Shown: piece by piece, positions 1,415-42,042 of the stretch
Position numbering within the stretch: the stretch's first letter is position 1
Layout: the number at the start of each line of letters is the position of its first letter
Source of the DNA: Hemiscyllium ocellatum
Taxonomy: Eukaryota
Direction of reading: 5' to 3'
Assembly: GCF_020745735.1 (NCBI RefSeq)
Contig: NC_083449.1
Location: 6,856,923-6,920,922, forward strand
Length of the DNA: 64,000 nt
Notes under the pieces: model-generated
Told to the model about the DNA's origin: nothing
The model's input: the letters and a program-made list of their open reading frames with translations, nothing else
Database searches by the model: none
Made by a program: the position numbers and the translations under genes

Positions 1415-1966
<552 letters not shown>

Positions 1967-1998
1967 GGATAAAGCGACTCTTTTCCAACGAACCCAAA

Positions 1999-2039
1999 GG
2001 CTCTTATCAGAGCCACCCAAATCCTCCGATGGAGAGCGG
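1999..2039 (+). terminator. Histone 3' stem-loop and purine-rich HDE of H4
   Basis: CCCAAA-GGCTCTTATCAGAGCC-ACCCA (stem-loop 1999-2014), then GGAGAGCGG. Confidence 0.93.
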
Positions 2040-2264
2040 AGACCTGAGGACGGGGAAGGTAGCGCATACTGAGGAGAATGTTACTGTAGTCGGTTCCGTT
2101 CCGAAAGTGTACTAATACCGTGTTCTGCGGTACGGCGGATTGCAACACTTTGTTGCTGTTTGTCGTGGCGAACGATTTTCAAATTGGAAATATTCCTGCA
2201 GTGTAGATAAGAGGCTATTCGGTCAATTTTTTCCATGTAAAGAATCACATCATAACTTGTAATT

Positions 2265-2430
2265 GTAAGATGTAGAAGCAGCATTAGACCATTCTGCCCA
2301 TCCAGTTTGTTCTGCTATTCGGACATGGCTGATATTTCTCAAACTTACTCTTGTGCCTGCTCCCCGTAACCTTCGATCCTCTTTCTCGGGAATACATGTC
2401 TATCTCAGTAATGACATCAATGTCTACTTG
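2265..2430 (-). mobile_element. Old CR1 LINE 3' tail fragment
   Basis: Similar to the CR1 tail at 58140-58300 (ccattcggcccatc...catggctgat). Confidence 0.5.
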
Positions 2431-2980
2431 GCTCTCCATATATTATTATTCATGGCATTTTTATTTATTGTGGAGCCCGGACGTTAATGTTACGTATTAC
2501 AGTATTTATGTTTCCCAGGCATAGTAAAGCTCAGTTTTGTTACTAGGAGCCCGCGGATGTGTTAAGTGGCGTGATTTTTCCATCTGCCCGTTCAGGCAGC
2601 GATTACAAATTATGTTCGGGCAAGTAATAATTTGAATGAAATAACAATTACTGATAAAGTGTGGTTCTGTAATTTTATCGGTGTACACTGTTTTAGCTTT
2701 TAAGATGTTTACATCGGCGGTTTTTCGATTGACTCACGGCGAATACAAGTTCGGTTGCTCATCCAGAGAGAGCAGGAAGCGATAGGGGACATTAGTCCAG
2801 TATTTGCAAATAATGAGATCTTCATTCAGGGATTGCGGAAATATAGTAATTAGATGAGTGATGTTCACATTAAATTTTGGTATTGGGTTAGATATTTGTG
2901 GAAAATCCCCATCTCCTCATTGACTCCCTTTGCGTTAACATGGCTTGAGGTGAGGTGGAGGCAGGAGAGAGAAAAGGGAA

Positions 2981-3046
2981 AAAATGGCGCCAAGAGATCA
3001 ACGGCTTATTTTCAAATTTGAAAATGCCCGCCATCACGTATAAAAG
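2981..3046 (+). promoter_or_regulatory. Orphan histone-type promoter with no downstream CDS
   Basis: AAAATGGCG, TTTTCAAATTTGAAAA palindrome (3009-3024), GCCCGCC and TATAAAAG (3039-3046). Paralogous to 4214-4265 upstream of H2A. Confidence 0.5.
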
Positions 3047-3567
3047 AGTAGGAGGATGCACGACTTCGAACACTTTGATTGAGTGAAGTTTAGTTTCATA
3101 ATCGAAAAACCGATCTCACTTTACCACATTCCCTCCTTTTACAGCTGAAAAATGACTGACTGCTGTTGAACATGCCCTCTCTCTCCAGAGGCTGGCGGAA
3201 GAGTGGACATGAACCGAGCAGAGAATAAATTGCAGAGGTATATGCTGCAGAGACAGTGGGAGGATTCAGCTCTTACTGATGCGGTTAAAGGAAACGTGAA
3301 GCCAAACCCGATCGGGAACATCCGTGACACTATTCTAAACTCATAGAACATTGATCAAACATAAAGGTCACTCAGGCAGTGACCGTGCAATGAGAAATAA
3401 TGTAGTTCCAGACACTCTCACAATCGTATTCAATTATATAATACTCCTCTGCTGCCACAGACAGTAACAGTATCCAATAAAAAGGAGATAGAAATGTAGC
3501 GATGTTAGGTATAACGGCCAGGGCTCTACATATTAAAGAGGAAAGTAATTCAATCCGACAGACGGTT

Positions 3568-3609
3568 CAGCCCCTTTCACAGATGCTGTGAGTGGCTCTT
3601 AAAAGAGCC
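3568..3609 (-). terminator. Histone 3' stem-loop and HDE of H2A
   Basis: Minus-strand GGCTCTTTTAAGAGCC (3594-3609), ACTCA, then GAAAGGGGCTG. Confidence 0.93.
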
Positions 3610-3639
3610 TTTGGGTTGTCAGATTCAAGGATGGTCTCT

Positions 3640-4077
<438 letters not shown>

Positions 4078-4585
4078 TCACTTATACCTTCGGGAGGAAT
4101 GGTGGGGCGGACATTTCGGATTGGTCAGCATCTCCAAATGTTGTTTCAATTCCCAATCAGAAATCTGCCTCATTTCCCTATCCGGAGAGGGCCCGGGGAG
4201 GAGGGCGGAAAGTACCGGCGCCAAATCATCAACCGCTTTCTTTTCAATTTGAAAAGCCCGCCAATTTCCAAACAAAGGAGTATGTTTTACCTGAATAAAA
4301 AGTACAAAAAATTGAGGAAGTTCAAAAAAACATTAATACTCATGTTAATTTAACTTTTAGTTTACAAATGTATAATTCACACGGTCTGAGTCTCCCTCAT
4401 TTGCCGATCTGTATTTGATCTTGAGAGTGGGTTAATTTCTAAACCTTGAGAAGTAGCTGAAATAAACACTGCAGTTTGCAACCTGGCTTTTCTCTTCACA
4501 TTTCAGTACCACCCCGATATGCTGATAAAGCAGCACACAACATTCTTCCGGCTCAGCATCGAGGGCGAACGCGTTTTTTAAGACG

Positions 4586-5457
4586 ATAAAAGTCGGTGGA
4601 GTTGTGGATAGTGAGGAAGGAAGTGGTAGGTTACAGCGGGATATAGATAAGTTGCAGAGCTGGGCGGAAATGTGGCAAATGGAATTCAATGTAGCTAAGT
4701 GCGAAGTCGTTCACTTTGGTAGGAATAACAAGATGATGGATTACTGGGCTAATGGTAGGCTACTTGGTAGTGTGGATGAGCAGAGGGATCTTGGTGTCCA
4801 TGTACACAGATCTCTGAAAGTTGCCACCCAGGTAAATAGTGCAGAGGAAGGCATATGGTGTACTGGGCTTTATTGGCAAAGGAATTGAGTTCCGGAGTCC
4901 TGAGGTCATGTTGCAGTTGTATAAGACTCTGGTGAGGCCTCATCTGGAGTATTGTGTGCAGTTTTGGTCGCCATACTATAGGAAGGATGTGGAAGCTTTA
5001 GAACGAGTGCAGAGGAGGTTTACCAGGATGTTGCCTGGAATGGTAGGAAAATCTTATGAGGAAAGGCTGAGGCACTTGGGGCTGTTCTCATTGGAGAAGA
5101 GAAGGTTTAGGGGAGATCTGATAGAAGTGTATAAGATGATTAGGGGTTTAGATAGGGTAGATACTAAGAACCTTTTTACCGCTAATGGAGTCAGGTGTTA
5201 CTAGGGGACATAGCTTTAAATTAAGGGGTGGTAGGTATAGGACAGATGTTAGGGGTAGATTCTTCACACAGCGGGTTGTGAGTTCATGGAATGTCCTGCC
5301 TATATCAGTGGTGAACTCTCCTTCTTTATGGTCATTTAAGCGGGCATTGGATAGGCATTTGGAAGTTATTGGGCTAGTTATTGGTTAGGTAGGATTCGGT
5401 CGGCGCAACATCGAGGGCCGAAGGGCCTGTACTGCGCTGTATCTTTCTATGTTCTAT
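4586..5457 (+). mobile_element. Young 5'-truncated CR1 LINE
   Basis: WAEMWQMEFNVAKC, LYKTLVRPHLEYCVQFWSP and FFTQRVV motifs with a (TTCTATG)-type tail. The empty site is visible in the paralog at ~41240. Confidence 0.92.
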
Positions 5458-5885
5458 ATTTTAAATCCGTCCACCCTTATTGCTCTCAATCAGATTCAGC
5501 TCCACGTTTCAGTCCGGTAGCTGTGTTGGTGTTTCCTCGGTTCGGTTTGAAAGTCTCTCACCAACAACATGAAGATTTATTTTGCATTGCAAAAAATCAG
5601 ATCAAACCCGAGGATTGGAAATGTAAAGTAAATCACACGGTAAAATGCATCAATCGTGGGATTGAAAGACGTGGGCATTTGTCTGCCAGGGGCGAACAAG
5701 CAATATGAAAAATGACTCACGGGCGCCTGACCTGCTATGTCCACCCCACTCCCGAATAATTTGCAAAGCACTTATTAACACAAAACATATAGCACTAGAA
5801 GCTAAAACGCCTCATCAAAAATCACACGGAAACTAAAACAAAGAACTCAAAGAAATGGTTCAACTGTCTCAAGGATGTTGTGGGT

Positions 5886-5901
5886 GGCTCTTATAAGAGC
5901 C
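5886..5901 (-). terminator. Histone 3' stem-loop of H2B
   Basis: CCCAAA-GGCTCTTATAAGAGCC-ACCCA on the minus strand. Confidence 0.93.
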
Positions 5902-5942
5902 TTTGGGTTGTGGATGTGTTTGTTTCAGGACAATGCGGTCCT

Positions 5943-6323
5943 TCACTTGGAGCTGGTGTACTTGGTCACCGCCTTCGTGCCCTCCGACACGGCGTGCTTG
6001 GCCAGCTCCCCGGGCAGCAGCAGCCGCACGGCGGTCTGGATCTCCCGGGAGCTGATGGTGCTGCGCTTGTTGTAATGGGCCAGGCGGGAAGCCTCCCCCG
6101 CGATGCGCTCGAAAATATCGTTGACGAACGAGTTCATGATGCTCATCGCCTTGGAGGAGATGCCGGTGTCGGGGTGAACCTGCTTCATCACTTTGTAGAT
6201 GTAGATGGAGTAACTTTCTTTCCTGGACCGCTTCCTCTTTCTGCCACCCTTCGTTGGCGCCTTCTTGATAATTTTCTTCGCGCCCTTCTTGGAGGTTTGC
6301 TGTGCTTTCTTCTCATCAGCCAT
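5943..6323 (-). CDS. H2B: Histone H2B (126 aa)
   Basis: ATG at 6323. [14 protein letters not shown]...[27 protein letters not shown]...KYTSSK. TATA at ~6380 and CCAAT boxes at ~6435 and ~6482. Confidence 0.98.
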
Positions 6324-7309
6324 AACGCCGCTCACTTTCAGACACAGAATAAGGGAAAGCGGGCTCGGAGTTCCCTCTTTATAGACTGACGGCGTCAGCA
6401 ATGCTAATGAGGGATGGGGAAAGGCTTGCTCCTGATTGGGTAGTTTGCACAGAGTCAATCCAAAACATGGAGTCTCTCTGATTGGTTAGTGTGAGATTCA
6501 ATATGGATCTGCAACGAAATGTGAAGTGGATGGTGATTCTGTGCCTGTCACTCTAACTGAGGGAGATTTATTTTGTGTCTGTGATACAGAAAATGCCTGT
6601 GGTATTGGCTCGGTTTCCTTTTGCTTGTTGTTGTGATGATGTGTTTCTCGCTCCGCATGTCTATTTCTGATGCTCTGTATAGGCTGGAATTAACACACAA
6701 CTTGTCACTGTGTGGAAAAAAACTCATCCATTCGAAATTGCGATTACATTTGTTGTCAAGTTACACAAACCATGGAACCTGACTGTGAATGTTTTCTACA
6801 CTTGGGGTTGAAGCATCTCGTTCTCAATTGCACAGAGTTGAAGAGAAATGATAAGAAAAGGTTACTATATAATACTTTTCTTGAGTCACGAGTTGAGTCA
6901 TGTCTTGACTGCGGGATGAATATATTTCTGAGACCTTGACTGATAACTGTGGGTCCAGAAACGTATCGATAACTGTGTGCTTTGAAAGTACGTGCAGTGT
7001 AACTGGACCACGTCGCTGCACTTTTCAATTAGGCGTCTTGCAGTTTCATGCAGGGATTTATAACATTTCTCAGTCTTATGCGAATACTTGTTAACCAGCA
7101 ACTGTCAGCATGCTATGTATATATGCGTCACTTTAACTTTATATCTGTCATGTCCTAATTTACACATTTTGCATTAACTCAACATCTGTCCAATGAGGCT
7201 CTGGTTTCAAGACAGGTTTTATTCTGTAACCATCAAACACTGATGTGAGCGGTAAACGTTACACTATTTGCCAGTCACTTGGAAATATTCCTCCAATCTA
7301 TGAACCCAG

Positions 7310-7437
7310 GGGAAAATGAGAACTGCAGATGCTGGGGATCAGAGGCTTATGCCCAAAACGACGAGATGAAGGGCTTCTGCTTAAAACAACGATTCTCCTG
7401 CTCCTCGGATGCTGCTGTGCTTTTCCAGCACCACACT
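7310..7437 (+). mobile_element. Short Penelope-tail insertion with two degenerate hammerhead cores; paralogous copy at ~19150-19290
   Basis: Inverted tail piece followed by gcttatgccc...gatgaagggc...cgattctcctgctcctcggatgctgc, matching the PLE tails at 48925 and 54230. Confidence 0.7.
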
Positions 7438-8574
7438 GGAAAATCTCCAATCTGTGCCCGTCTGTTTCTGGGATGTATTTTTGTAAACTCTATTTCACAG
7501 TCTTAACATGTCATTATGTTACTGGACTGTAACTCAACCTTCTGAAGTGTACCTTGTTGCTTTACTCTGTCTGTGTTAATTTTGAAAGTACCAGGTACCA
7601 CTTTGGACAGACTCAGGTAGGACTCACTACCCTCCACTCCCAAACTCTATGAATATTAGCTTCTGCAAAGTGAAGTTGGGTTTGTATTTATAACTGCAGC
7701 ATTTTGATAAAGGATAATGCTTTGTATATTGTTACTGACAATATCTGCAATGTCACTGCGGATGTTACATTGTTTATGCCAGTTTATAACTAATCAATAG
7801 TTGTATTATATCCTAACAATTTATTGCGTTGCAACTCACTCAGTATTTCATTCTGTAAATGCCAGTTTATTGTTTCTAATCTTGTATTTACTCAGTATCA
7901 GTTAAACACTGGCATGACAGAGAGCAAATATCTCAACATCTCAAAGTTTCTGATGAAATGGATGGTTAATCTTTATTTCCACTCCATCCTTGATACATCA
8001 GGGTAACTTATAACTGAATCGATCAGTGTGTGATCTGTGAGCACACACATATCAGTAAGTTAATGATAAAGTGTATGGTGAATGATGCTGCAGATACAGT
8101 GTATTAGCTGTAGTTATTAATTTCTTTCAATCTTGTATCACTTTAAGTATCTCAAAACAGAAGACCATAAGAAGACCATAAGAAGACCATGTGTGCTCTG
8201 TCATGAGAACAAATCACCAAGGCTTTAGTTATGGTCTTCATCTCATTTTGATGTTTAGTGCCCATAACCAAAAACTCCCTTATGTATCAAAAAGTTATAT
8301 GGCTACATGAGCATAAATTAAGCTGATAACTCAACCCTAACTCCTCTCTGTAGAACAGAACAAGGAGAGAATGTTCTGCATTGCATTCTTAGACAGAAGG
8401 CTTCCTGTTCAAAACTGTGTTCCTTACTCGGGAGTCTCTCATCAGCATTGACATATTCCCAGCATCAACTCTACCAACTCCCTTCAGATCATTTTTTTTG
8501 CTCTAAAGGTCATACATTGTTCTTCAAAACTCAATGGAGAATATACCCAACGATTTTATACTTACAATGAGAGG

Positions 8575-9580
8575 CTATGTATCAATCTGCAGCTCTAAAC
8601 TTCTGCCATTCGAATATGTGAGTACAGGTGTCACCCTCTCCCAGTAAGAGTCTGCTATATGCGTACTTGAGTGAAGTTATCACCCTATACCTGTTGTATA
8701 TATACTGTGTGAATATGACGGTTTCTAATCTGTAAATGGGATAGTTTAATCAATTGTCTATATCAGTTTCTGCATTGTTCAAATGTGATCGTAGTTTTCA
8801 ATGTCAACCTGCCATCTTCTGCGAAGTGAACATGTGGGGGCCCATATTGAAATGTACTCATTGCTTTTAGCGACAGGAATGCATGAGTTTAGCTATCATT
8901 CTTTTCCTGTGAGTTTCTTCGATGTGAATGTATTGGTGTAGTTATCAATCTGTACTGATGAAGGGCTTTTAAACAAAACGTCGATTCTCCTGCTCCTTGG
9001 GTGCTTCCTGACCTGCTGTGCTTTTCCAGCACCACACTCCTGACTCTAATCTCCAACATCTTCAGTCCTCACCTTTACCTATCCATCTGTACCTGTCAGT
9101 TTCTGATCTGTGAGTATGGAAGTGTAGTTATTGATCTGTCCATCAGTTTCTGTAATTTGAATATGACTGTCTAGTTATCTATCTCGCCCTGTCAGTTTCT
9201 GTGATGTGAAGATGACAGTCCAATTATCTATCTGCCCCTGTCAGATTCTGCCGTGTGAATACAAGTGTGTCATTCTCAGTCTTTACCTGTCAGCTTTTGC
9301 TATGTCAATGCAATTTTAGTTATCAACCTGCCTCATTAGATTCTAAGTGAATTTAAAAATGTACTTATCTATATATACCAGAGAGATTCTGCTCTGGGAA
9401 TGTGGGTGTGTTATCAAAATGTACCTGTCAGTTTCTGCAATGTGAATGTGTTTGTGCAATCATCAGTCTATCCCTGACAGCTTCAATATATGAATAGATG
9501 AGTGCATCTGTACCTGAAAGTATCTGGACGTGTTAGTTTGTGCTCTGTGAATGAATGAGTGTACTTATATATTTGTCTCT
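8575..9580 (+). repeat. Degenerate ~47-49 bp minisatellite array
   Basis: Recurring unit approx. TTATCAATCTGTACCTGTCAGTTTCTGCTATGTGAATATGAGTGTAG. Interrupted by a PLE tail at ~8955-9080. Confidence 0.85.
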
Positions 9581-10246: not shown

Positions 10247-12277
10247 ACAGGTATGATGTTTTGGAAAGTGTTGGAGGGGTGATGACTGTTCATGCTACGT
10301 TCCCCTGAGAATCCAAGTTTCTGGTACAGTGACTGGCTCTAATGCAACGAGGGGTACATCGGCTTCCATGAGATCAATTGTGTGAGGGGATTCTGTAGTC
10401 CGAGGTACAGACAGACATTTCTGTGGCCAGCAGCGATAAAGCAGAACGGTGTGTTGTTTCTCTGGTGCCAGGATCAAGGATGTCTCAGAGAGAGTGCAGA
10501 ATGTTCTCACGGTGGAAGAGGGGACAGCAAGAGGTCATTGTCCACATTTGAACCAATGACATTGGAAGGGAAAAGGTTGAGATTCTGAAAGGAGATTACA
10601 GAGAGTTAGTCTGAAATTTAAAAAGGAGGTTACTCCCAGTGCTACAAGCTAGTGAAGGCAGGAATTGGAGGATAGAGCAAATGAATGCATGGCTGAGGAG
10701 CTGGTGTATGGGGAAAGATTTACATTTTTGGATCATTGGAATCTCTTTTGGGGTAGGAGTGACCTGTACAAGAAGGATGGATTGTACCTAAATTGGAAGG
10801 GGACTAATATACTGGCAGGGAAATTTCCTAGATCTGCTCGGGAGGAGTTAAACTAGTAAGGTAGGGTGGTTTGGGGGGGGTGGGAGTGGGGTGTCCGAAA
10901 TGAGGGTTTGGGAACCACGGATGTAGTGAGGAAAGAGATCAGTCTGTGACTGGCACAGTTGATAACAGAAGCGAGTCAAACAGTCAGGGCTAGCAGGCAA
11001 AAAGTAGGAGTAATAAATTGAACTGCATTGACTTCAAAGCAGGGGGCCTAACAGGGAAAGCAGATGAACTCAGGGCATGGTTAGGAGCATGGGACTGGGG
11101 TATCATTGTAATTACAGAAACATGGCTCAGGGATGGGCAGGGCTGGCAGCTTAATGTTCCAGGATACAAATGCTACAGGAAGGATAGAAAAGGAGGCAAG
11201 AGAAGAGGGGTAGTGGCATTTATGATAAGGGAGAGCATTACAGCTGTGCTGAGGGAGGGTATTCCTGCAAATACACCCAGGGAAGTTATTTGTGTGGAAC
11301 TGAGAAATAAGAAAGGGATAATCACCTTATTTGGATTGCATTATGGATCCCTGAATAGTCAAAGGGAAATTGAGAAACAAACTTGTAAGGAGGTCTCAGC
11401 TATCTGTTAGAATAATAGGGTGGTTATGGTAGGGGACTTTAACTTTACAAACATAGACTGGGACTGCCATAGTGTTAAGGGTTTAGATGGACAGCAATTT
11501 GTTGAATGCATACAAGACAATTTTCTGATTCAGTATGTGAATGTACCTACTGAAGAAGGTGCAAACCTTGACCTACTCTTGGGAAATAAGGCAGGGCAGG
11601 TGACTGAGGTGTCAGTGGGGGAGCACTTTGAGGCCAGCGACCATAATTCTATTAGATTTAAAATAGTGATGGAAAAGGATAGACCAGATCTAAAAGTTGA
11701 AGTTCTCAATTGGAGAAAGGCCAATTTTGATGGTATTAGGCAAGAACTTTTCAAAGCTGATTGGAGGCAGATGTTCGCAGGTAAAGGGACGGCTGGAAAA
11801 TGGGAAGCCTTCAGAAACGAGATAACGAGAATCCAGAAAAAGTATATTCCTGTCAGGATGAAAGGAAAGACGGGTAGCATAGGGAATGCTGGATGACCAA
11901 AGAAATTAAGGGTTTGGTTAAGAAGATGAAGGAAGCATATGTCAGGTATAGACAGGATAAATCGAGTGAATCCTGAGAAGAGTATAAAGGAAGTAGGAGT
12001 ATACTTAAGAGGGAAAGATTTAAAAGAGACCTAAGGGACAACTTTTTCACACAGAGGGTGGAACGGGTATGAAATGAGCTGCCAGAGGAAGTGGTAGAGG
12101 TTGGTACAATTGCAACATTTAAGAGGCGTTTGGATGGGTATATGAATAGGAAGGGTTTGGAGGGATATGGGCTGGATGCTGGTAGGTGGAACTAGATTGG
12201 GTTGGGATATCTGGTCGGCATGGACAGGTTGGAGCAAAGGGTCTGTCTCCATGCTGTACATCTCTATGACTCTATGA
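10247..12277 (+). mobile_element. CR1 LINE: ORF1 esterase remnant and ORF2 endonuclease, internally deleted, with 3' tail
   Basis: FLDHWNLFWGRSDLYKKDGLYLN, IVITETWL, MVGDFNFTNIDW and SDHNSIRF. Jumps to the 3' end at ~12015. CTATGACT tail. Confidence 0.92.
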
Positions 12278-12741: not shown

Positions 12742-12821
12742 CTGCTGTTTGTTCGAAGCAGCTGGTCACACTTGGTTCTGTATACTTGGTATTACATTGT
12801 CTTGGTCCTTTGGGTCCTTGC
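12742..12821 (-). other. Candidate non-coding exon (80 nt), paralog of 17493-17574
   Basis: Acceptor ttttgtcttcctccag and donor CAG|gtatgt on the minus strand. Confidence 0.5.
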
Positions 12822-13187
12822 CTGGAGGAAGACAAAAGAGATATCACAACATCAGCTGTGATTAGCAACATCAATGTAACATTCAGTTCCTCATCATTAA
12901 GGATTTTTTATTTAAAGCCAGCAATTTAAACAGAACCACGGGTCTGAGCTGTTCCTGGTCCATTTTCTCTTAAAATTCTTAGCCCAAAGGAATGAGATCC
13001 AGAAATGAAACAACACCCATACAGCTCTATAAATGGGGCCTACCTGACGCAAGTGGGTATATGAGTTTAGTTATTGATCTATGCTTGTCAGTTCCTGCTT
13101 GGAGAATGTGAGTGTGTAGTTATCAAACTGTAACATTCATTATATTCACACTGCAAAGTCTGGCAGGGTCCAATTGATAACTATTGA

Positions 13188-14400
13188 ATCATAAAAATAA
13201 TACAGGACAGAAGGGACTATTCAGCCCATTTTGTCCATGCCAACCAAAGACCCCCAGTGGTCCTTTCTCATTTTCTTACCGCAGCCTGTAGCCTTGCAGT
13301 TAACGGAACTGGAGGTGCAGTTCCAGGGAGTTTTGTTTAAAAGAGTTCAGGGTCTCTGCCTGCACCATCAAATCAGGCAGCAAATTCCACTACTCTATGC
13401 ATAAAAAACATTTTCCTCACATATCATGTAATCCTACACCACTTTGTTTGAATCAATGATCCCTGGTGTTTGAACTCTCTGCCAAAGGAAACACGTTCCT
13501 CCTGTGTACTCTAATCTCTCCCTCTCACTATTTCGTGAAAAATCACACAACACCAGGTTACAGTTCAACAGGTATATTTGGAAGCACGAGCTTTCGGAGT
13601 TCTCTCCTTCATTAGTAGCTCACTGTTTAGTATTCACTATTTAATATTCCTTAATCATGGCATCTCTGTTCCAAAGAATAAAACCCAACCTCCCCAATCT
13701 CTCCCGATAGCTACAATTCACCAGCCCTGGCAACATTCTAGTAAATCTCCTTTGCACTCTCTCCAGAGCAATGACGTCCTTCCTGTGATGTGGTGACCCG
13801 ACTGCACACAATACTCCAGTTGTAGCCTTACCAGTGCCTTATACAGTTTCATTGTTATATCCCTACTTTTGTATTCCATCCCTCTGCCCATGAAGGAGAG
13901 TATTCTACGTGCCTTCTTTACAACCCCATCTACCTTTAGGGACCCATGCACTTGCACACCAAGATCTCTCACTTACCCTGCTCCCTCAGTATATTCCCAT
14001 TTATTGTCTATTCCCATTTACTTTTGGATTTCCCAAAATTTCCCTTACACTTATCAGAGCTGAACGCCATCTGCCACTTTCCTGCCCACTCCACCAAACC
14101 ATCTGTAATACATTTGGAGCTGACAGCTATCCTCTACACTATCCACGAAATGGCCAATTTTTGTGTCATCTGCAAATTCCACAAATCTGCCCACCACATT
14201 CAAGTCCAAATCCTTAATGTATAAAACAAACAGCAGAGGTCCCAACACTAAGACATGCAGAGCACCACTTGAAACAACTTTCCATTCACAAGACCAGTCA
14301 TCAACCATTACCATTTGTTTCCTGTTACTAAGCCAACATTGCATCCAATTCACCACATTACCTTGTATCCCACAGGTTTTACTTTTTGAACCAGTCTGCT
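13188..14400 (-). mobile_element. CR1 LINE RT/3' part, containing a PLE-tail insertion at ~13538-13620
   Basis: VLGPLLFVLYIKDL, FADDTKIG and LYKALVRLQLEYCVQ. Confidence 0.88.
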
Positions 14401-16803
14401 GTGATAATGATGATCCTTTAACAAGCTTGTAAAAGACACAGGCTCCGAAAAGTCTGACTTGATGGGTTTTAGGGACATTTTGATTATAGATTATGCCTCA
14501 GGCAAAAGGCTTCCACATTTTTAAGAAGAACTTATACAATGAAAGGGGAGTGTCCCAGTTTTCCCAGCTCAGCTTTTCTCTGGTTTCATTTGGTTTTTGG
14601 CTGTCTGGCTATTGACTGAAAGTAGTCAGGCAATTGAAAAAGCTGCTGAACCCAAAGAAGCCGGTCCATGCTGGTACTCTCTCTCTCTCTCTCTCTGACA
14701 TCTCTCCTGTAAGACCCTGTGTTTGATTTTAAGGGTGTTTGTGGGGATTGTTGGAAGTATTGGGAACAGCATCATTAAGTTGGTATAATCTGTAGGGTTT
14801 TCAGATAGGTTAAGTTATTTAGTATTCTGTTTTCTTTTAAGGCAAAGGAGCATTTGTTTAGTGTTTCATTTGATAATCTTGTAAATCTATTCTGTTTTGT
14901 TTAAAACAACATGGTTTGACCAGCTACATCACCCCGGAATATCCACATTACACCTGCTTAAAACAACTAGCAAGGTTAGGGTCTGTGCTACTTGAAATGT
15001 TTTGAGGGGGTCTGGCCTGATCCGTACCAGTTAGGGTGCTTTTTGCAGGATTTGTTCTGTACTCCTGATTTCGGATTAGGGTTGTTGGACTCGAAGGCAG
15101 CGAGTGGTAGGCGTTAGTGTCCTTCGTTCCGGGTTTTGAATTCAGTTGATTTAAACAATGTTTAGGAGAGCAATGGCTCTTTCAGTCAACCAGAGTTTTC
15201 TGCAGGTGGAAGAAGTGATTTTGGGCCTTTTACAAAAGGTGATTAAGGGTAAGCTGCTGGAAATAGCAAACAATCTGGGATTGAGGCCGTGTCCTTCCAT
15301 GAGGAAAGGAGAGATAATTACAGCAGTAGCTCAGCATTTACATTTGTTGGAAACACCATCAGAATCTTTAGAGATGGCTAACATTCAATGGAAAACGCAG
15401 CAACTTGAGTTAGAGGCAAATGACAAGGAAAGGGCAACCGAAATGAAATGTTTTGAATTATGACTAAACGCAGAAGAGAGAGGAGAGAGAGAAAAGCAGA
15501 GAAAGAAAAGGAAGAAAGAGAGGGAGTTTGAACTTTGGAAAATGGCACTTAGACAGGAGTCCAAAAATTCACTTCCTGAAGTGGTGAAAACCCATGTGAG
15601 TTAAAGTGACAAGATTGGCAGCTGAAATGGCTGATGGTTGTGAGTTGATCCATAAATCAAAGTTTAGCTTCTAAAACCAATTTCAATCCATGAGAGATAG
15701 AAGTTGAGGATAAGAGAAATCCTCACATGGAAAGGAAATGATAGATCTCAGTGAAGGTCGTAAGGATGACTTATCACAGGGTAAAAAAGGAAACACCTGA
15801 AGGGGAAAGAGAAGTTAAAAAGCTCTGGTGTTTTCGCTACAATAAAGTAGTGTTGGTGGGTTAGGAAAGGCACTGGGAAGCCAGATTTAGGAAACAGAAT
15901 AAGCCAGTGAATTTGTTGGGAAGGTAACAGAAAGCACAATGGAGGCTCGAAAGCGGCACCAGAATGTACAAGCTAGTTGAAGGTGCCAGATCTTCTTAAA
16001 CCATCCACCTCTGAAGGTAACGTTTATTTGAATAGGTCAGGAGGATCACGTAAAGTGGTTACAATATTAAGAGATACAAAGATCCTCTAAATCAATGATG
16101 CCGAAAGATGTGGTGATATGTACCTCTGAAGGACGATTGCTAGAAAAGGTACTAGTAACGGAATTCATGTTGAGACAAGAAGCACTGAATTGTGAGAAGT
16201 GAGGTTAGAGTGTCCAGTGAAGAGTGGAGAAGTTGTGGTAGGAGTAGAGGACAAACTCTCAGCTCCGGGAATACAATTTGTCCTTGCTAATGATATTGCT
16301 GATTCACCGGTAGGAGTGCTGCCTACTGTGGTTGAAAAGCCAATGGAAAATCAGGCAACTGAATTATTGATGGACACATATCCTGGTGCACACATTTTTC
16401 CTGAGTGTGTGGTGACAATGTCACAGTCATCAGTTGAAACAGGAGCGATCAAAGAGTACAGATAAAGTTGAAGTGAAATTAGCAGAGACCCTGTTTGATC
16501 AGATGGTTGAGACAAACTGGGAAGAGATAGCTGAGTTAAATTAACCAAGTTACAGCAGAAAGATGAAAATTTACAGCAAATTTACCAAATGGCCAACACA
16601 GAAAAAAAATCTTAATATATCCCTGCATAATATTATCTTAAAAATGATGTCTTAATAAGGAAATGGAGACCAACACATATTCAGGCTGATGAGAAATGGG
16701 CAGAAGTGTATGAAGTTGTATCGCCAGTGGATTTTAGAGGGCGATGTTGTGAGTAGCGCATGAGCTCCCACTTGGACATCATTTTGGAGTGAGAAAAACT
16801 CAG
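14400..16803 (+). mobile_element. Gmr1-like Gypsy LTR retrotransposon remnant (LTR, gag, protease, integrase N-terminus)
   Basis: gag-like MALSVNQSFLQ...; ILRDT protease motif at ~16065; SGEVVVGVEDKL...LANDIA; AHELPLGHHFGVRKT at ~16755 directly after the protease (IN before RT). Confidence 0.75.
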
Positions 16804-16949
16804 ACTTTTGCAGACATTGTTTGGAAATCACATTATTTAAGTGTCGTCTCTGTGACGATTGTTCAGTAAAAGATTAATGCTGTCCTTCTCAGTCATAGAT
16901 AAACCCCATGTAAATGTGCTTCATCTGGGTTGGAGGCTTTGAGTTAGTG

Positions 16950-17215
16950 GTAGAGACTGAGTAGGCTGGAGTTGTTTTCCTTGGAGAGGGACCTTTATAG
17001 AGGTTCATAAAATCATGAGCAGCATGGATAAGTGGTGGAGGCTGGTACAATTACAATATTTAAAAGGCACCTGAATGGGTATGTGAATAGGAAGGGTTTA
17101 GAGGGATATGGGCCATGTGCTGGCAAATGGGACTAGATTGGGTTGGGATATCTGATTGGCATGGACAAATTGGACCGAAGGGTCTGGTTTCCGTGCTGTA
17201 CATCTCTATGACTTG
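16950..17215 (+). mobile_element. CR1 3' fragment
   Basis: Standard tail ggtttagagggatatgggcc...ctctatgact. Flank shared with 25855-26090. Confidence 0.85.
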
Positions 17216-17492
17216 ATGGTTGTGAATAATAACACTTATTGGAAATGGGGTGATGTGCAGTGAGAATGGAGAGAGAGAAACTGTTGATGAGCAGTTTCCC
17301 TCCATCTCTGTACTTAGCAGCTACCTCACAGATGGTTGTTGAAACTATGTAACAGTGTGATTTATTTGTACATTTGTAGAAAATGTTCTTATTAAATGCA
17401 GATTTTAATGCTGTTCCTGAGTGTCTATTTTGGATGAGGATTCAGTCTATCTATCTTCAAAACTGATGTATAAATGTCAATGGGCTACATAC

Positions 17493-17574
17493 CTGCTGTT
17501 TGTTTGAGGCAGCTGGTCACACTTCCCTTTGAACTGAGGAAGTATTACAGCATCTTAGTCCCTCAAGTATTTGT
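17493..17574 (-). other. Candidate non-coding exon 3 (82 nt) of the minus-strand transcript, unit 1
   Basis: Acceptor ctctctatcttcctccag and donor CAG|gtatgt. Both are preserved in the paralogs at 33304-33384 and 12742-12821. Confidence 0.55.
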
Positions 17575-17828
17575 CTGGAGGAAGATAGAGAGACACCATC
17601 TGTTAATCAACATGAGGCGAGTCTGACAAAATTGATCAATGTCACATTCATTGCACATTCGTTAGGATAAGCCAGCAACTTAAACAAAACCATGAATCTG
17701 ATTCCATTGTTGCACTGAGCTGCTCTTTGTCTGGAGATTGTGTTTGTTTTTCATATGATTCTATATCAAATGAGTGAGATGGAGAAACTGAGCAACAACT
17801 GCACAGCTCCATGAATGGAACTACTCAC

Positions 17829-17875
17829 CACCGGAATGCTAACAGTTCAATATGCAACTCTCAATACACTAGTTG
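17829..17875 (-). other. Candidate non-coding exon 2 (47 nt), unit 1
   Basis: Acceptor tttttttctctctccag and donor GTG|gtgagt. Homolog at ~33616-33655. Confidence 0.5.
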
Positions 17876-18042
17876 CTGGAGAGAGAAAAAAATGGCGCTA
17901 TATCTATTTTTTTTCCCCAAGACCCACTCCTTTTACCGGTGTATCCCATTCCTACAGTCGGTCTACGATTCCACTATTGACTGCACAACCTCAACAAACA
18001 GCGGGAAACAATGAAATCTCAACAGAGTTCAGAGGATTGTAA

Positions 18043-18417
18043 ACCACAAGAATGTCCCACAGCAGCTTCTTCCCGCTCTGCCTCCCTCAGCAGGCCCACA
18101 CACAGCCCGAGAAAGGCCTCTCTCTTCCCCCCCAGCCCGCTCACTCCAAGTTCCGGGACCAGTTCCTGCTCCGCTCGGCCTCTTACAAACAGCCCCCGGT
18201 TCTCCCTGAACTCACCCCGAATCAATCCCGGTCTCGGAGCCCCCTCTGTGTCCCAGGCTCCCATCCCGATGTGCTGCTGGAAGGAGCCTGCTGTTCCCTC
18301 ACTTCCCTGGGCGCTGATCTCTCCATTGCGGTCTGTTTCAAACAAACCTCTTGCACTCACTGAGTAAATGCTCCTCAATGGCAGCGCTGGGGGAGGGCCT
18401 CACGCATGCGCTCCTCT
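18043..18417 (-). promoter_or_regulatory. Conserved GC-rich cassette, copy 1: NRF1-type promoter, exon 1 and 5' intron
   Basis: NRF1-like ACGCATGCGC at 18402-18411, GCCATT initiator-like motif at 18377-18382, and minus-strand GTGAGT donors at 18355-18360 and 18210-18215. Only a few substitutions versus copies 2 and 3. Confidence 0.65.
18052..18363 (+). CDS. Hypothetical 103-aa orphan ORF inside the cassette (unproven)
   Basis: ATG-to-TGA frame open in all three copies. 4 synonymous versus 2 non-synonymous differences. No recognisable domain. Confidence 0.2.
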   Translation: MSHSSFFPLCLPQQAHTQPEKGLSLPPQPAHSKFRDQFLLRSASYKQPPVLPELTPNQSRSRSPLCVPGSHPDVLLEGACCSLTSLGADLSIAVCFKQTSCTH

Positions 18418-19554
18418 GCACAGGATCAATCAGCATTGGGGTGAAAAGGTTCAGTCCCAGATACAGTTGGGGCTGGAGTGAGCTGGAGGCGGAGCAGGGT
18501 GATCAAACACATTGCATTGCTCTGTCTGTCACTCAGTTTCCTCTGTATTCTGAATTAACATAGAACTTACCACTGTGTGAAAAAAAACTCATCCATCTAA
18601 AATTGACTTTACATTTGTTGTCAAGTTACACAATCCGCTAGAACCTAACTGTGAGTGTTTTCTACCCTTGGGGTTGATGTAACTCGTTCTCAACTGCACG
18701 GAATTGAAAATAAATGAAAAGAAAGAGTTTCTATGTAACATTTTTCTTGAGTCAAGAGTTGAGTCACGTCTTGAGTGTGTAACTAATATATTTCTGAGAA
18801 GTTGATTGATAATTGTGGGCCCAGAGACCTATCGATTACTGCTTAGGCGTCATGCAGCTTCATTTAGGAATTATAGCATTTCTCAGTGTTATGCGAATGC
18901 CTGTTAATCAGCAACTGTTAGCATGATATATATAGTTGTCACTTTAACTTTGTATCTGTCGCGTCCTTATTTACACATTTTGCATTAACTCAACAGCTGT
19001 CCATTCAGACTCTGCTCTTCTGTGTAATAGTCAACTAGTGTTACTTCAAGAGAGGTTTTATTGTGTATCTATCAAGCACTGATGTAAGCAGTAAAACGTT
19101 ACGCTATTTGCCAGCCACTTAGAAATATTCCTGCAATCTGTGTTCCTAGGAGAAGCGAGTTCTGCAGATGCTGAGGTTCAAAGGGCTTATGCTTGAAACG
19201 TCGAGATGAAGGGCTTATGCCCGATACATTGATTCTCCTTTTCCTCGGATGCTGCCTGACCTCTGTGCTTTTCCAGTACCACACTCTCAACACCAGTCTG
19301 TGCCTGTCTGTTTCTGGGATGTAAAGCATTTTTGTAAACCTTATTTCACAGTCTTTACATATCAGTATGTTACTGAACAATAACTCAAACCTTCTGAAGT
19401 GTAACTTGTTTTACTCTGTAGGTGTCATCCATTGACATAAGAATGTGTTTCATGTAGTACCTACAATTTTGAATGTACCAGATACCACTTTGGAGGGACT
19501 CAGGTAGGACTGACTACCCTCCACTCCCATACCCTATGAATATCAGCTTCTGCA

Positions 19555-19642
19555 CACAGACAGTCACCCAAGACTGGAATCGAACCTGGGACCCTGGTGC
19601 TGTGAGGCAGCAGTGCTAACCACTGAACCACTGTGCCACCCC
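19555..19642 (-). mobile_element. HE1-type SINE 5' fragment
   Basis: ggtggcacagtggttcagtggttagcactgctgcctcacagc on the minus strand. Confidence 0.85.
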
Positions 19643-21617
19643 AAGAGCAGGGGTAGGATCTCCAGGGAGAATATGCCCAACCATTTTATACTTACAATGA
19701 GACCGTATATATCAATCTGCAACTTGCAGATTCTGCCACGTGAATATGCGAGTACAGTTGTCACTCTCTCCCTGTCAGTTCTGCGATGTGCACACTTGAG
19801 TAAAGTTACCTACCTGTACCTGTGGGTTTACACTCACTGAATGTACGAGTAGAGGTATTACTCTCTCCCAATAAGATTCTCGTATTGCATACTTGAGTGA
19901 AGTTATCACCCCATACTTGTTGGCTCCTGCTATGTGAATATGACAGTTTTTGCTCTGTGAATGTGATTGTTTAATTATCAATCTGTCCATGTCAGTTTCA
20001 GCATTGTTAAAATTTGAACATTGTTATCAATATCTCAGGTAGGGGTCTACATCTGGGTGAGATCCACTTTGGAGAGTTGTTGCTGAGGGCTGGGCCAAAT
20101 GACCTCTATCTGCAATGGGGAAATTCTATGTACTGTAAAAGAAAGTGAGACTTTTATACTATTGTCTGTCTCTGACAGTACAGGCCAGTTTGGACAATTT
20201 CCACAACTTCTATTCTACGGTACGGTTCATGGTTGTAAGTTATATTCTGAGCATTTTGAGTTTATTGTTCACATGTTTATAACAAGACCACTGTATGACA
20301 GCTTTTTTATTCTGTGTCCAATAATCCCTGGGGATCTGACTGAATGTGTATGTTTTCATTTCAATATTTCATTTCCCTTTGGACCACTTGAAAACAACGT
20401 ATTTATTCAGTCATTTTGGAAGAGATGTGTTCTGTTTTCACTTTGTGGAAATGAATTAAATTGCAATATTTGTTTCAATCTGACACTTGGCCTGCTATCT
20501 AATTCCTCCAGTTTGGACAAACAGAATTGATACAGGAATTACATACAGTCATAGAGTCAGACAGCAACTTTAAACCATGGTGAGATAATTGGATGAATAC
20601 TTAATCTGAATGTTTATTTACTTCTTTCCCTACACAACTGGAATACATTGTGGACATGCAATAGGGGGCTCAGTATTTCTGAATAAACAAGTGGAGTTTA
20701 CTTTTTGACCAATGTGATACTATGCATTTAAATTTGATTAGAAGTTCACTTGTACACTGGGACTGAGACATTTCACTCTTACCCTGTCCTGTTTAACTTC
20801 ATTAATAAAATGCTAGCTCTCCCAACCAGGCAATCCTTGTGGGCATGATTTTTCTATTTTTGCCTGTGGATTTACTAACCTGACAGTATTTATATGCTTT
20901 GCAAGTTATTCTATACCCACTGTGTACTGGCACTATCTCATTCTTTGTTGTGTCCAGAAATCAGTTTCCTTCACACCCTTCATTACATGAATAAGGACAA
21001 TAACCGGCACAGTCAGCAACTATTTGCTCTGCTCTTCCATTCACTTGTACGGCTTGTGTACTTGGGAATTACTATCTACCTGTGAGCCTGTGCTTTTCAG
21101 TGGGACTGGCCCTTCAAACCTCTGCTCAGATGTGACAGGCTGCCACAGTGTAGAGCCGCAATGTCTAGTGAAGACCTTAGAAACTAAAATTTAATGTTGA
21201 CTACTCAGGCTGTTCTCCACTGTGTATATACACTTACTTTATGTATTAAAAAAAGATTTTTGAAAGGAACAGTTATGACACAGGGAGGATGCCCATACTC
21301 ACTTGACCCTGCTTCAGTCTTCCTGCATTGTGTTACTGAACAGTTTAAATGTTTGCTATAAAGTGGACAGCCAGTTAGCAGAGTGGGACAGGAGAGAGTT
21401 CTCAGTTCATGTTTCCTGAAGTGAACGGGAAAGATCTTATTTTCTGTAATTGTTTGTATCTGTAGGATTCACAGACAAGTAAAACTGCAACACATTGCCA
21501 TGGAAACAAGTCTGTGCTGTTCTTAAAAGTAAGGTGAGAAAAGCAATGGACTTTTGCAACTCTAAGAGTGCGGAATCTAACTGGGAGTAGTGATATCAAG
21601 GTCTGGCCTTCAGAGTG

Positions 21618-25140: not shown

Positions 25141-26035
25141 GAGGTATAGTTAGTAAGTATGCAGATGACACCAAAATTGGAGGTGTAATGGACAGCGAAG
25201 ATGATTACCTCGGATTACAACAGGATCTTGATCAGATGGGCCAATGGGCTGAGAAGTGGCAGATGGAGTTTAATTTAGATAAAGTGAGGTGCTGCATTTT
25301 GGGAAAGCAAATCTTAGCAGGACTTATATACTTAATGATAAGGTCCTAGGGAGTGTTGCTGAACAAAGAGACCTTGGAGTGCAGGTTCATAGCTCCTTGA
25401 AAGTGGAGTTGCAGGTTGATACGATAGTGAAGAAGGCGTATTGTATGCTTTCCTTTATTGGTCAGTGAATTGATTACAGGAGTTGGCAGGTCATGTTGCA
25501 ACTGTACAGGACATTGGTTGGGCCATTGTTGGAATATTGCATGTAATTCTGATCTCTACCTATTGGAAAGATATTGTGAAACCTGAAGGGGTTCAGAAAG
25601 GATTTACAAGGATGTTGCCAGCGTTGGAGTATTTGAGGTATCGGAAGATGTTGAATAGGCTTCAGGCTGTTTTCGGAAGGGTAAACTAATAGAGTTTGAT
25701 AAAATCATGAGAGCTATGGATAGGATAAATAGACAACATTTATTCCATGGGGTAGGGGAGTCCAGAGCGAGAGGGCATAGGCTTAGGGTTAGAGGGGAAG
25801 ATTTAAAAGGGATCTGGAGGGCATGTGTGTATAGAATGAGCTGCCAGAGAAGTTGGTGGAGATTGGTACAGTTACACCATTTAAAAGGAACCTGGATGGA
25901 TACACGAACAGGAAGGGTTTAGAGGGATATGGGCCATGTGCTGGCAAATGAGACTGGATTAGTTCAGGATATCTGGTTGGCATGGATGAGTCCAGCCGAA
26001 GTGTCTGTTTCTGTGCTGTATAAATCTATGACTAT
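25140..26035 (+). mobile_element. CR1 3' portion
   Basis: YADDTKIGG, WAEKWQMEFN and the CR1 tail. Confidence 0.9.
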
Positions 26036-27719
26036 GTGGCAGTGAATAATAACATTTATTGGAAATGGGGTGATGTGCATGGAGAGTGATAAAAACATTG
26101 TAATTCCTTGGTGGGATTTAACTCTTTGTTTGAAATGGAGCTGAATATGCATCTAATTCAAACAGCTCTGAGACTGTGAAAAGGACGTTCTTTAGTCTGA
26201 CAATAGTAACAGAGCTGCTGTTTGTTAGAAGAAACTGATCACACTTGGCTTTGCCCCGAGAGAATATATCTTGGTCCTTCAAGTATTTGTCTGGAGGAAG
26301 ACAGAAGTGACATCTCCTGTAAATCAACATTAAGTTTGACAGTATCATTCATTTAATAATCATTAGGCTGCTTTTCTTTCAAACCGGCAAGTCCAACAGA
26401 ACTACAGGTCTGATTCTAGTCTTGGCCTGAGCTGCTCTTTGTCTGGTGATTATAATAAAAATATCTATACCAATTCACTGAGAACCAGGTACTAACCAAC
26501 GCCTCCACAGCTCCACAATAGGGCTACCAATACAAGTGTGTATCTGGATCTGACAGTTACCTGTCAGTTCCAGTGAGATGAATGTGGAAGTACAGCTGTC
26601 AACCTGTACCTGTCAATAGAAGCTGTGCAAACGTGTGAGTGCATGTACTTATCAATCTGTCCCTGTCACACTCTGGTAAATATAGTTACATTTTGGCATT
26701 GCAGAGACTGACAGGGATGGATTAATAACTACACTCACACATTCACATAGTTATCAATGTATATCTGTCAGTTTATGCTAAATTCATATATCCACACAGA
26801 ATAAATTTGCAGGGACTGGTTGTTAAATACATTTTATATAAATAAAATCTGTTTCACTGATGGGGATGTGAGAGTTTAGTCATCAATATGTACCTGTCAG
26901 TTTCTGCCCTGTGAATGTGTGAGTTTACATACCAATCTGTCCTGAACAGTTTCTACTGTATGTAGACGGTAGTTATCAACCTGAACCTGTCAGTTTCAGC
27001 TATGAGAACGCAAGTGTCATTATCAGTATCTACCTGTCAGTTTCTGCTGTATGAATATTAAATGCAGTCATCAAATTGTACCCATCAGTTCTTCTGTGTG
27101 AATGTAGATATTGATCTCTATTTGTCTGCTTTAGCTATACCAATGTGTGAATGCAATTATCAAACAGTACCTGTCAGGTTTTGCTATTTGACACCAGAGT
27201 GTCTTTGTCAATCTGTTTCTACCACGTCAATTTGAGAGAGTCGATACCAATCTGTCCCTGTCAGTTTCTTCCCTGTCAATATGTGAATACAGTTATTGAT
27301 CAGTACCCATCAGATTCTGCTGTGAATATGGGTGTATTAATCAAACTGTAGTGGTCAGTTTCAGCGATGTGAATGTGGGAGTACAGTTACCATTCTCTAC
27401 TGGTCAGTTTCTTCTTTGTCACAGTGAGTGTAACTCAATCTGTACCTTTCAGACTCTGCTGCGTGAATACATAAATATAGTTATCAATCTGCAGCTGTCA
27501 GTTTCTACTTGGTGAATATGTTTATATAATTGTCAATCTATCCCTGCTATGTGAACTTGCGAGCTTTGTGAATGTGAGAGTTTAGTTATCAATATTACCC
27601 TGTCACGCTCTGTAATTCCAGTGTTTTGAGTGTATTTATTCATCTTTTCCTGTCAGTTTGTGTGACTGTAGTTATCAGCCTTTTCCCTTCAGATTCTGCT
27701 ATATGAACATAAGACTACA

Positions 27720-33303: not shown

Positions 33304-33384
33304 CTGTTAGTTGTTAGAAGCAGATGGTCATACTTGGCTTGTACTGAGGAAATATTACATTATCTTGGTCCATCAAACATTTGC
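33304..33384 (-). other. Candidate non-coding exon 3 (81 nt), unit 2
   Basis: Acceptor tcttttcttactccag and donor CAG|gtatgt. Confidence 0.55.
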
Positions 33385-33793
33385 CTGGAGTAAGAAAAGA
33401 GAGATATCATCATTTCTGAGTAGAAAGAAATCAACTGATCAACACAACATTCAAGTCATGATCATGATACTTCTGTTTTTAAAAAGAACAAGGTCTGGTT
33501 ACAAACAACACGGAGCTCCTCCCAGTCTTTTTCTGTTTGCGAAATTCTGAAACAATTTACTCAGATGAAAGAAAACTAACCAACATATGCACAGCTCCAA
33601 AAATAGAATAATTACACAGTTCAAAATTCAGCTTCCACAAAAAAAACACTAACTGCTGAAGGAAGAACAACGGGCACTTTTATCACATTTAGATCACTGT
33701 CCTTTATTTCCCAACGATTCAAAGTCTATTCGCAACAAACAGCGGGAAACAGAAGCCAAACAATCAATTCCATCAGTTTTTAGGGGATTAAGA

Positions 33794-34215
33794 ACCACAA
33801 GAATGTCCCACAGCAGCTTCTTCCCGCTCTGCCTCCCTCAGCAGGCCCACACACAGCCCGAGAAAGGCCTCTCTCTTCCCCCCCAGCCCGCTCACTCCAA
33901 GTTCCGGGACCAGTTCCTGCTCCGCTCGGCCTCTTACAAACAGCCCCCGGTTCTCCCTGAACTCACCCCGAATCAATCCCGGTCTCGGAGCCCCCTCTGT
34001 GTCCCAGGTTCCCATCCCGATGTGCTGCTGGAAGGAGCCTGCTGTTCCCTCGCTTCCCTGGGCGCTGATCTCTCCATTGCGGTCTGTTTCAAACAAACCT
34101 CTTGCACTCACTGAGTAAATGCTCCTCAATGGCAGCGCTGGGGGAAGGCCTCACGCATGCGCTCCTCTACTCGGGAACAATCAGCATTGGAGGAGGGACT
34201 GCATCGCGCATGCGC
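33794..34215 (-). promoter_or_regulatory. Conserved GC-rich cassette, copy 2
   Basis: Two substitutions versus copy 1 across the 312-bp ORF span. NRF1-like motifs at 34153-34162 and 34206-34215 (perfect GCGCATGCGC). Confidence 0.65.
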
Positions 34216-40280: not shown

Positions 40281-40671
<391 letters not shown>

Positions 40672-41617: not shown

Positions 41618-41633
41618 GGCTCTTAAAAGAGCC
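41618..41633 (-). terminator. Intact histone stem-loop of the H2B pseudogene
   Basis: GGCTCTTTTAAGAGCC with CCCAAA/ACCCA flanks. Confidence 0.9.
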
Positions 41634-41674
41634 TTTGGGTTGTGGATGTGTATGTTTCAGTGCAGTGCGGTCCT

Positions 41675-42042
<368 letters not shown>

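Follow-up and report, generated by a model that had tools for sequence, protein, structure and literature searches.

A near-invariant cassette of a shark histone cluster as the probable 5' module of a multi-copy, spliced and probably non-coding transcription unit

The window analysed here, a continuous stretch of 64 kb (64,000 nucleotides) of Hemiscyllium ocellatum DNA, holds one intact gene each for H4 (1655-1963, plus strand), H2A (4032-3643, minus strand) and H2B (6323-5946, minus strand), and no H3 gene. The only assembly in which the H2B and H2A proteins of the window were found is GCA_020745735.1, on a 16.2-Mb record, and PMC10587355 gives this assembly as the paternal haplotype of the epaulette shark. 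The window also holds three copies of a GC-rich non-histone block of 375 bp, referred to below as the cassette (Table 1). Between cassette copies 2 and 3 lie a second H2A (40615-40284) and a second H2B (41983-41678), both on the minus strand and both frameshifted pseudogenes. The H2A pseudogene (40284-40615) is spread over two frames, misses its first 19 codons and has no stem-loop detected nearby by Rfam, and the H2B pseudogene (41678-41983) matches only from residue 25, has its N-terminus in another frame and retains a histone 3' stem-loop (41593-41638). Within the window, Rfam places the histone 3' stem-loop (RF00032) only there and at 3569-3614, with none near any cassette.

Table 1. Coordinates of the cassette copies, of the features assigned to the associated transcription unit, and of the intervals over which copies 1 and 2 were compared
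Feature	Position	Strand	Remarks
Cassette copy 1	18043-18417	-	homogenised GC-rich block: promoter, exon 1 and proximal intron 1; BLASTN, alignment
Cassette copy 2	33794-34168	-	exon 1 equivalent 33967-34141; BLASTN, alignment
Cassette copy 3, left part	50995-51332	-	intron part and most of exon 1
Cassette copy 3, right part	54362-54460	-	exon 1 start and promoter with two NRF1-like sites; cassette match 54362-54413
Exon 1	18216-18390	-	~175 nt; 5' end approximate, high-depth contig reaches 18389
Main 5' splice site GTGAGT of exon 1	18210-18215	-	contigs diverge here; joints end 18214-18219
Intron 1, first 173 nt	18043-18215	-	invariant; two more GTRAG motifs (18186, 18144)
Proximal 82-nt exon, copy 1	17493-17574	-	AG 17576-17575, GT 17492-17491
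Distal 80-nt exon, same exon family	12742-12821	-	polypyrimidine-AG acceptor, GTATGT donor; joint to exon 1
Proximal 81-nt exon, copy 2	33304-33384	-	AG 33386-33385, GT 33303-33302
Distal exon module, unit 2	26187-26317	-	donor GT lost
NRF1-like palindrome, copy 1	18402-18411		one mismatch to 10-mer consensus; just upstream of inferred start
Two NRF1-like palindromes, copy 2	34153-34162, 34206-34215 (perfect)		CCAAT-type motif between
Two NRF1-like sites, copy 3	54398-54407, 54451-54460		right part of split copy
H4 distal promoter remnant	18436-18544	+	homolog of 1415-1535, 81% identity
Identity of copies 1 and 2	17575-17990		about 48%
Identity of copies 1 and 2	17991-18042		60%
Identity of copies 1 and 2	18043-18215		173/173
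Identity of copies 1 and 2	18216-18390		173/175
Identity of copies 1 and 2	18391-18417		26/27
Identity of copies 1 and 2	18418-18440		78%
Identity of copies 1 and 2	beyond 18441		24%

When 17900-18700 is compared with the window by BLASTN, matches are obtained at 33733-34190 (93.7%, 459 bp), 50960-51332 (94.9%, 375 bp) and 54362-54437, and cassette matches are confined to the three copies, each at the same place in the repeat unit. A sequence-only reading of this DNA had described three near-identical copies with six differences and no indels, an abrupt loss of identity to the left, and paralogous flanks far more diverged than the block itself. Alignment and per-position comparison bear out all three points. 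The copies differ at 6 of 338 positions (18043-18380), namely 18102, 18254, 18258, 18261, 18301 and 18333, and no indel was found; just outside the block on the left, identity drops to ~50-60%; and between copies 1 and 2 the intron is ~48% identical and the proximal short exon 77-79%. The block forms a GC island, with 58-65% GC against 35-41% in the flanks and a CpG observed/expected ratio of only 0.4-0.57. Copy 3 is interrupted at 51332/54362 by a transposon insertion of 3,029 bp, bounded by a 15-bp TSD (51318-51332 and 54362-54376). An RT-bearing element is present here in three copies that are 95-96% identical (51332-52628, 53111-54333 in inverted orientation, and 54698-55991); the first two sit as an inverted pair in the interrupted exon 1 of copy 3, with the third placed immediately to the right of what remains of the cassette.

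Self-comparison of the window reveals the traces of old tandem units, in which 6673-7576 aligns with 18541-19425 at 75% and 7029-10248 matches 18843-20384. Copy 1 had been said to continue directly into a homolog of the H4 upstream region, and it does so: its right end is separated by 18 bp from an H4 distal promoter remnant, which in turn is joined straight to the homolog of 6673 onward, with a breakpoint at ~18541-18544. Since the remnant jumps to this homolog, the H4 proximal promoter, H4, H2A and H2B have been deleted from the copy 1 unit; the unit right of copy 1 is ~5.1 kb shorter than the intact one. From these relationships an ancestral unit can be reconstructed, which would have consisted of a cassette (minus strand), H4 (plus), H2A (minus), H2B (minus), a spacer, a distal short exon (minus) and a proximal short exon (minus), followed by the next cassette.

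The earlier proposal that the cassette occurs once per histone unit agrees with this putative ancestral arrangement and does not describe the window as it stands, where one intact H4/H2A/H2B set (1655-6323), one deleted set and one H2A/H2B pseudogene pair (40.3-42.0 kb) are present. The proposed linkage to H4 likewise holds in part: it is seen at copy 1 only, through the distal promoter remnant, and no cassette in the window has an intact H4 partner beside it. Within the window, the cassettes have outlasted the histone genes. A comparison with ten H4 loci of other animals found no similarity to the cassette.

Evidence of transcription comes from sequencing runs. The 31-mers of the block are present in runs of at least six organism labels and at least ten studies, many of which resemble RNA assemblies. 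Three contig sets with different organism labels (X17, X15 and X19) were placed on 12750-18700; their runs are only guessed to be RNA, and their contigs are unstranded and carry no marked start or end. In these probable RNA contigs, depth in the bin 18123-18321 is 1434, 3277 and 1290 (X17, X15 and X19, respectively), against 22.6, 11.5 and 66.7 in the bin 17924-18122. The high-depth contigs include 18246-18307 (1998, X15) and 18258-18389 (704, X19), and the low-depth contigs are 18006-18244, 18063-18224 and 18095-18241, so that probable RNA depth overall amounts to 700-3400 over ~18246-18389 and to 20-68 over 18006-18244. This 20- to 100-fold step coincides, under all three organism labels, with the minus-strand GTGAGT donor at 18215-18210. 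Unique neighbouring bins (16730-16928 and 17725-17923) have a depth of 0 or near 0, and coverage that is uneven across four orders of magnitude, with unique bins close to zero, fits RNA and is unlike whole-genome DNA. In X22, a poly(A) single-cell run of raw RNA reads, no read fell anywhere on the window, so that this run speaks neither for transcription nor against it.

The contigs also carry the marks of splicing. Just left of 18216 they cease to match the window, and several different sequences continue in their place. One joint connects 12820/1 to 18215/6 (cut +1), with CT..AC on the plus strand, which is GT..AG on the minus strand; its acceptor at 12821 has a polypyrimidine tract and an AG at 12823-12822. 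The join between exon 1 and exon 2 is seen again in a second run (X17). Further joints link ~17572-17589 to 18215-18219, and ~17490 to 12810, with a few intervening letters that match paralogous versions of the short exon; these are read as transcripts of other family members, including joins of one short exon to another. It is the splice motifs that assign the transcript to the minus strand.

Two observations on the contig sets stand apart from the gene model. The intervals 16929-17326 and 13347-13744 reach k-mer depths of 10,000-70,000 in all three sets, as expected of very abundant repeats in transcript assemblies, and the family of the first interval recurs at 12067-12276 and 25829-26038. 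A run of seven Cs at 18127-18133 is one C shorter in all covering contigs of three runs, and the three copies of the window agree with one another at this point; the mismatch reflects either a homopolymer error that recurs in the assembly or a genuine departure from the majority copies that are expressed.

Together, the alignments and joints support a structure in which the cassette comprises a promoter with NRF1-like palindromes, exon 1 and the first 173 nt of intron 1, and in which exon 1 splices to exons of ~82 nt. A profile search of the window with this exon returned four modules, all on the minus strand (17602-17464, 12851-12713, 33414-33275 and 26317-26187), and the splice sites are kept in three of them. 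For copies 1 and 2 alike, the proximal exon lies ~410-470 bp downstream and the distal exon 5-8 kb downstream. The short exons are mutually only 70-80% identical, approximately as diverged as the intron flanks. Satellite-like arrays with 65-80% self-similarity are found in each unit (~9080-9470, 26866-27500, 43465-44113, 46800-48300 and 49200-50930), and one of them stands in place of the expected proximal exon region in the left flank of copy 3.

The right end of the cassette and the adjoining exon and intron have promoter-type features, two of which, an NRF1-like motif and strong minus-strand GTGAGT donors, had been pointed out beforehand and prove to exceed expectation. With one mismatch allowed, the NRF1-like motif has six matches in the window against 0.14 expected, and five of the six lie at the right ends of the three cassettes. 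The pentamer GTGAG has five matches on the minus strand of the block and none on its plus strand (null mean 1.38, P = 0.008, dinucleotide shuffles); the more general GTRAG occurs six times on the minus strand (18403, 18360, 18302, 18215, 18186 and 18144), again with no plus-strand match (P = 0.002, dinucleotide shuffles). Poly(A) signal hexamers (AATAAA/ATTAAA) are absent from the block. Furthermore, plus-strand GC skew, which lies between -0.2 and -0.5 over 18000-18350, becomes positive at about 18350-18450, that is, near the inferred start. Given this flip, both divergent directions would yield G-rich RNA, which is the pattern of bidirectional GC-rich promoters. The depth step at the donor, the CT..AC joint, the NRF1-like sites and the skew flip thus combine, on the footing that the runs are probably RNA, to support the leftward transcription unit that the sequence-only reading had proposed.

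A perfect E2F-type motif, TTTCCCGC, is found on the minus strand at 18001-18008 and 33742-33749. These two sites belong to intron 1 of copies 1 and 2, at a distance of 35-45 bp beyond the left end of the block, and copy 3 has the motif in mutated form. The window has four matches to it against 0.56 expected, the remaining two being located inside the transposon insertion of copy 3.

The transcription unit is most likely non-coding. In each combination of exon 1 and exon 2 that was translated by hand, a stop is encountered inside the 82-nt exon; the ATG whose frame is open through the donor is followed by 16 codons of exon 1 and then by a stop in every version of the 82-nt exon, and the first ATG of exon 1 opens a 34-codon frame that terminates within that exon. 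A minus-strand frame of 119 aa has two stop-creating changes in copy 3, and its product has no Pfam domain and finds in the PDB only an ABC ATPase at E about 0.8 (phmmer). Pfam returned no family at E≤10 for the open frames of the block, including the histone fold PF00125, and phmmer returned no histone chain from the PDB. Nine downstream minus-strand ORFs were equally devoid of Pfam domains.

Known RNA families are similarly unrepresented. Rfam 15 gave nothing relevant at the gathering score over the whole window, and its best match in 17800-18800 (E≤10) has E 2.8 and 6.8 bits; no tRNA was found. A structured small RNA, or an intronic snoRNA or miRNA, was considered as the product and rejected, with folding z-scores of 0.13 for 18043-18215, -1.48 for exon 1 and -0.32 for the whole plus strand, and no Rfam match. 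That the block is not a recognised RNA gene or transposon, as first noted, is in line with the lack of an Rfam match, the lack of a TSD and flanks that are homologous but diverged.

The explanation favoured here, to which we assign a probability of roughly 0.7, is that the cassette serves as 5' module to a multi-copy minus-strand gene that is transcribed by RNA polymerase II, spliced and probably non-coding, and that lies head-to-head with the H4 promoter, where many histone repeats have H3. In the proposed mechanism, a TATA-less NRF1/CCAAT promoter would fire leftward at ~18390, and productive elongation and splicing would be favoured by the U1-type GTRAG motifs clustered within its first 250 nt. 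Exon 1 (~175 nt) would then join at least one 82-nt exon to give a long non-coding RNA. Gene conversion among the many copies of the cluster, combined with selection on the promoter and exon 1, would keep the 375-bp block uniform, and conversion would be confined to the block because the flanks are too diverged. As a guess, the likeliest role would be exerted in cis, with putative divergent transcription holding open the promoter region shared with H4.

The uniformity of the block deserves separate consideration. At 97-100% identity it exceeds not only the introns (48-77%) but also the H2A and H2B copies (94-98%). One of the differences falls in the intron part (18043-18215) and five fall in the exon, a distribution short of significance (binomial p about 0.11). 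The part within the intron varies no more than the exon does, so selection on the RNA product alone is insufficient; the two GTRAG motifs of this part, as alternative or decoy donors, may be one reason for its constraint. Copy 3 is still 97-99% identical despite the transposon in its exon 1, ~10 nt from the inferred start, and a copy that stays uniform with its exon 1 split implies that uniformity need not reflect the function of each copy. The overall pattern is consistent with gene conversion between numerous copies in combination with selection on the family's exon 1 and promoter, and a GC-rich block is in keeping with biased conversion; with no more than six differences, conversion and selection cannot be told apart.

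An intron part about as invariant as the exon is also what would be expected if the block were mainly a regulatory island at the DNA level, either the upstream half of a bidirectional H4 promoter or a GC-skewed, R-loop-prone island, with the spliced RNA as a by-product. Such an island agrees with the strong strand skew of the GC island, which flips at the start site, with the direct adjacency of copy 1 to the H4 distal promoter, and with downstream exons that evolve approximately as fast as introns (77% vs about 48-70%). However, copies 1 and 2 have remained almost identical in the absence of a neighbouring H4 gene, the splice sites of the 82-nt exon survive in three of four modules, and probable RNA depth over exon 1 is high in three organism labels. 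Taken as the main function of the block, the island is rather unlikely; it overlaps the preferred reading of a spliced gene and does not exclude it.

The position of the block raises the question of its origin. If it were the decayed 5' part of an H3 gene, the promoter would have stayed active and the body would have gained splice donors, an origin that is compatible with the spliced gene favoured above. Position and orientation are those of the H3-H4 pairs at the loci of other animals (for example, locus L004), and two collinear, weak tblastn segments correspond to H3 residues 5-26 and 43-107. When H3 sequences from loci retrieved with the H4 of the window were aligned by a frameshift-tolerant dynamic programme, the minus strand scored 45 against 33.8 ± 5.8 for shuffles (p=0.044, uncorrected), and H3 on the plus strand and H4, H2A and H2B on both strands gave p>0.5; the minus-strand value nevertheless fails correction for the eight protein-strand tests. 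Other searches speak against such a relic: nhmmer with an H3 DNA alignment gave no match even at E≤1000, neither phmmer against the PDB nor Pfam detected a histone, and the histone 3' stem-loop is absent near every cassette. We regard the possible similarity to H3 as a lead, not a result, and consider an H3 origin distinctly unlikely.

It is less likely still that a small protein of 103 aa is encoded without introns on the plus strand (18052-18363), with the boundaries of the block being those of its mRNA. None of the three copies interrupts this ORF, whose start lies 9 nt within the conserved region, counted from its left boundary, and four of the six differences are synonymous in it against 25% expected (uncorrected p about 0.04). 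But three of the six frames are open in the block, as its composition predicts, and with six frames tested the p value is not significant. Moreover, the protein has no homolog among 5.8 billion proteins or in Pfam or the PDB, and its recognition score in a protein language model (1211, ESM Atlas) lies within the range of shuffled sequences. The contigs of three runs, by being one C short at 18127-18133, would change ~75% of the protein, and depth over the 5' half of the ORF is 20-100 times below that over the 3' half. Independent insertions of a transposon fragment or solo LTR would be another source of the three copies, for which the sharp boundaries, LTR-typical size and transposon-rich surroundings of the block might be cited. 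This idea is highly implausible and is rejected because copies 1 and 2 share homologous flanks in collinear order (left flank, 82-nt exon ~410-470 bp away, and distal modules) and no TSD is present at the block ends, to which may be added the absence of a transposon protein domain and the occurrence of just three copies in 64 kb, all in the same unit position and none elsewhere in the window.

Beyond the gene model itself, a bolder and rather improbable reading would have the replication-dependent histone repeat of the shark include the cassette as a selected, integral non-histone part, an additional 'gene' occupying the H3 slot, whose DNA or RNA acts in cis to organise or license the cluster, for instance by keeping H4 promoters open or by seeding the histone locus body. 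If true, this would account both for the uniformity of the cassette, which exceeds that of the histone genes, and for its survival in units whose histone genes have decayed. Textbooks use histone clusters to illustrate concerted evolution as well as a dedicated nuclear body. To our knowledge, their repeat units are thought to contain histone genes only, joined in some lineages by tRNA, 5S or snRNA genes, and the papers searched describe neither a comparable unit in shark histone clusters nor a matching lncRNA of histone loci. A spliced non-coding unit would be a new ingredient of histone clusters if it sits in the H3 position, is amplified together with the repeat across megabases and stays near-invariant where histone genes are deleted or broken. 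The cassette would also lend itself naturally to distinguishing selection from gene conversion in sequence that is non-coding, here a promoter with its first exon. Even as a mere by-product of the H4 promoter, it would be a clean example of promoter-restricted homogenisation.

Several known systems share some of these properties. SNHG14/SNORD116 and Rian/Meg8 are non-coding host genes built of repeats, and the cassette unit is similar to them in its serial short non-coding exons (~82 nt), which are duplicated with their intron flanks and spliced successively. Unlike these host genes, it has no intronic snoRNA or miRNA that could be found, and its most conserved elements are the promoter and exon 1 rather than an intronic RNA. 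Invertebrate histone repeats include linked 5S rRNA and snRNA genes, which, like the cassette, are non-histone transcription units repeated with the histone unit and evolving in concert with it. Those genes are structured and transcribed by Pol III or by snRNA-type Pol II, whereas the cassette has no Rfam match or significant fold and its product is spliced.

The closest positional parallel is the divergent H3-H4 pair, as at locus L004. The cassette has the same slot and orientation relative to H4, with an inferred start-to-start distance of roughly 250 bp, and it is homogenised as the histone coding region of such a pair is. In contrast to H3, it has neither a histone fold nor a 3' stem-loop, it is spliced, and its resemblance to H3 falls short of significance. 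In Drosophila, the H3-H4 promoter has been reported to nucleate the histone locus body.

Divergent lncRNAs transcribed from bidirectional promoters form a class of lncRNA/mRNA pairs in vertebrates, and the directionality of such promoters has been modelled as a 'U1-PAS axis'. The cassette resembles this class in lying within a few hundred bp of, and head-to-head with, the promoter of a protein-coding gene, represented at copy 1 by the H4 remnant, H4 itself being deleted. As in these pairs, it is TATA-less and GC-rich, with U1-type 5' splice motifs enriched and poly(A) signals absent just past the start. Its transcript is likewise spliced, as judged from the probable RNA runs, and lacks a conserved ORF, and conservation is far higher in its promoter than in the downstream exons. 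What sets the cassette apart from divergent lncRNAs is that it forms a many-copy family co-amplified with a tandem gene cluster, that its first 375 bp are homogenised to 97-100% against 50-80% in the rest of the unit, and that it persists after its protein-coding partner has been deleted.
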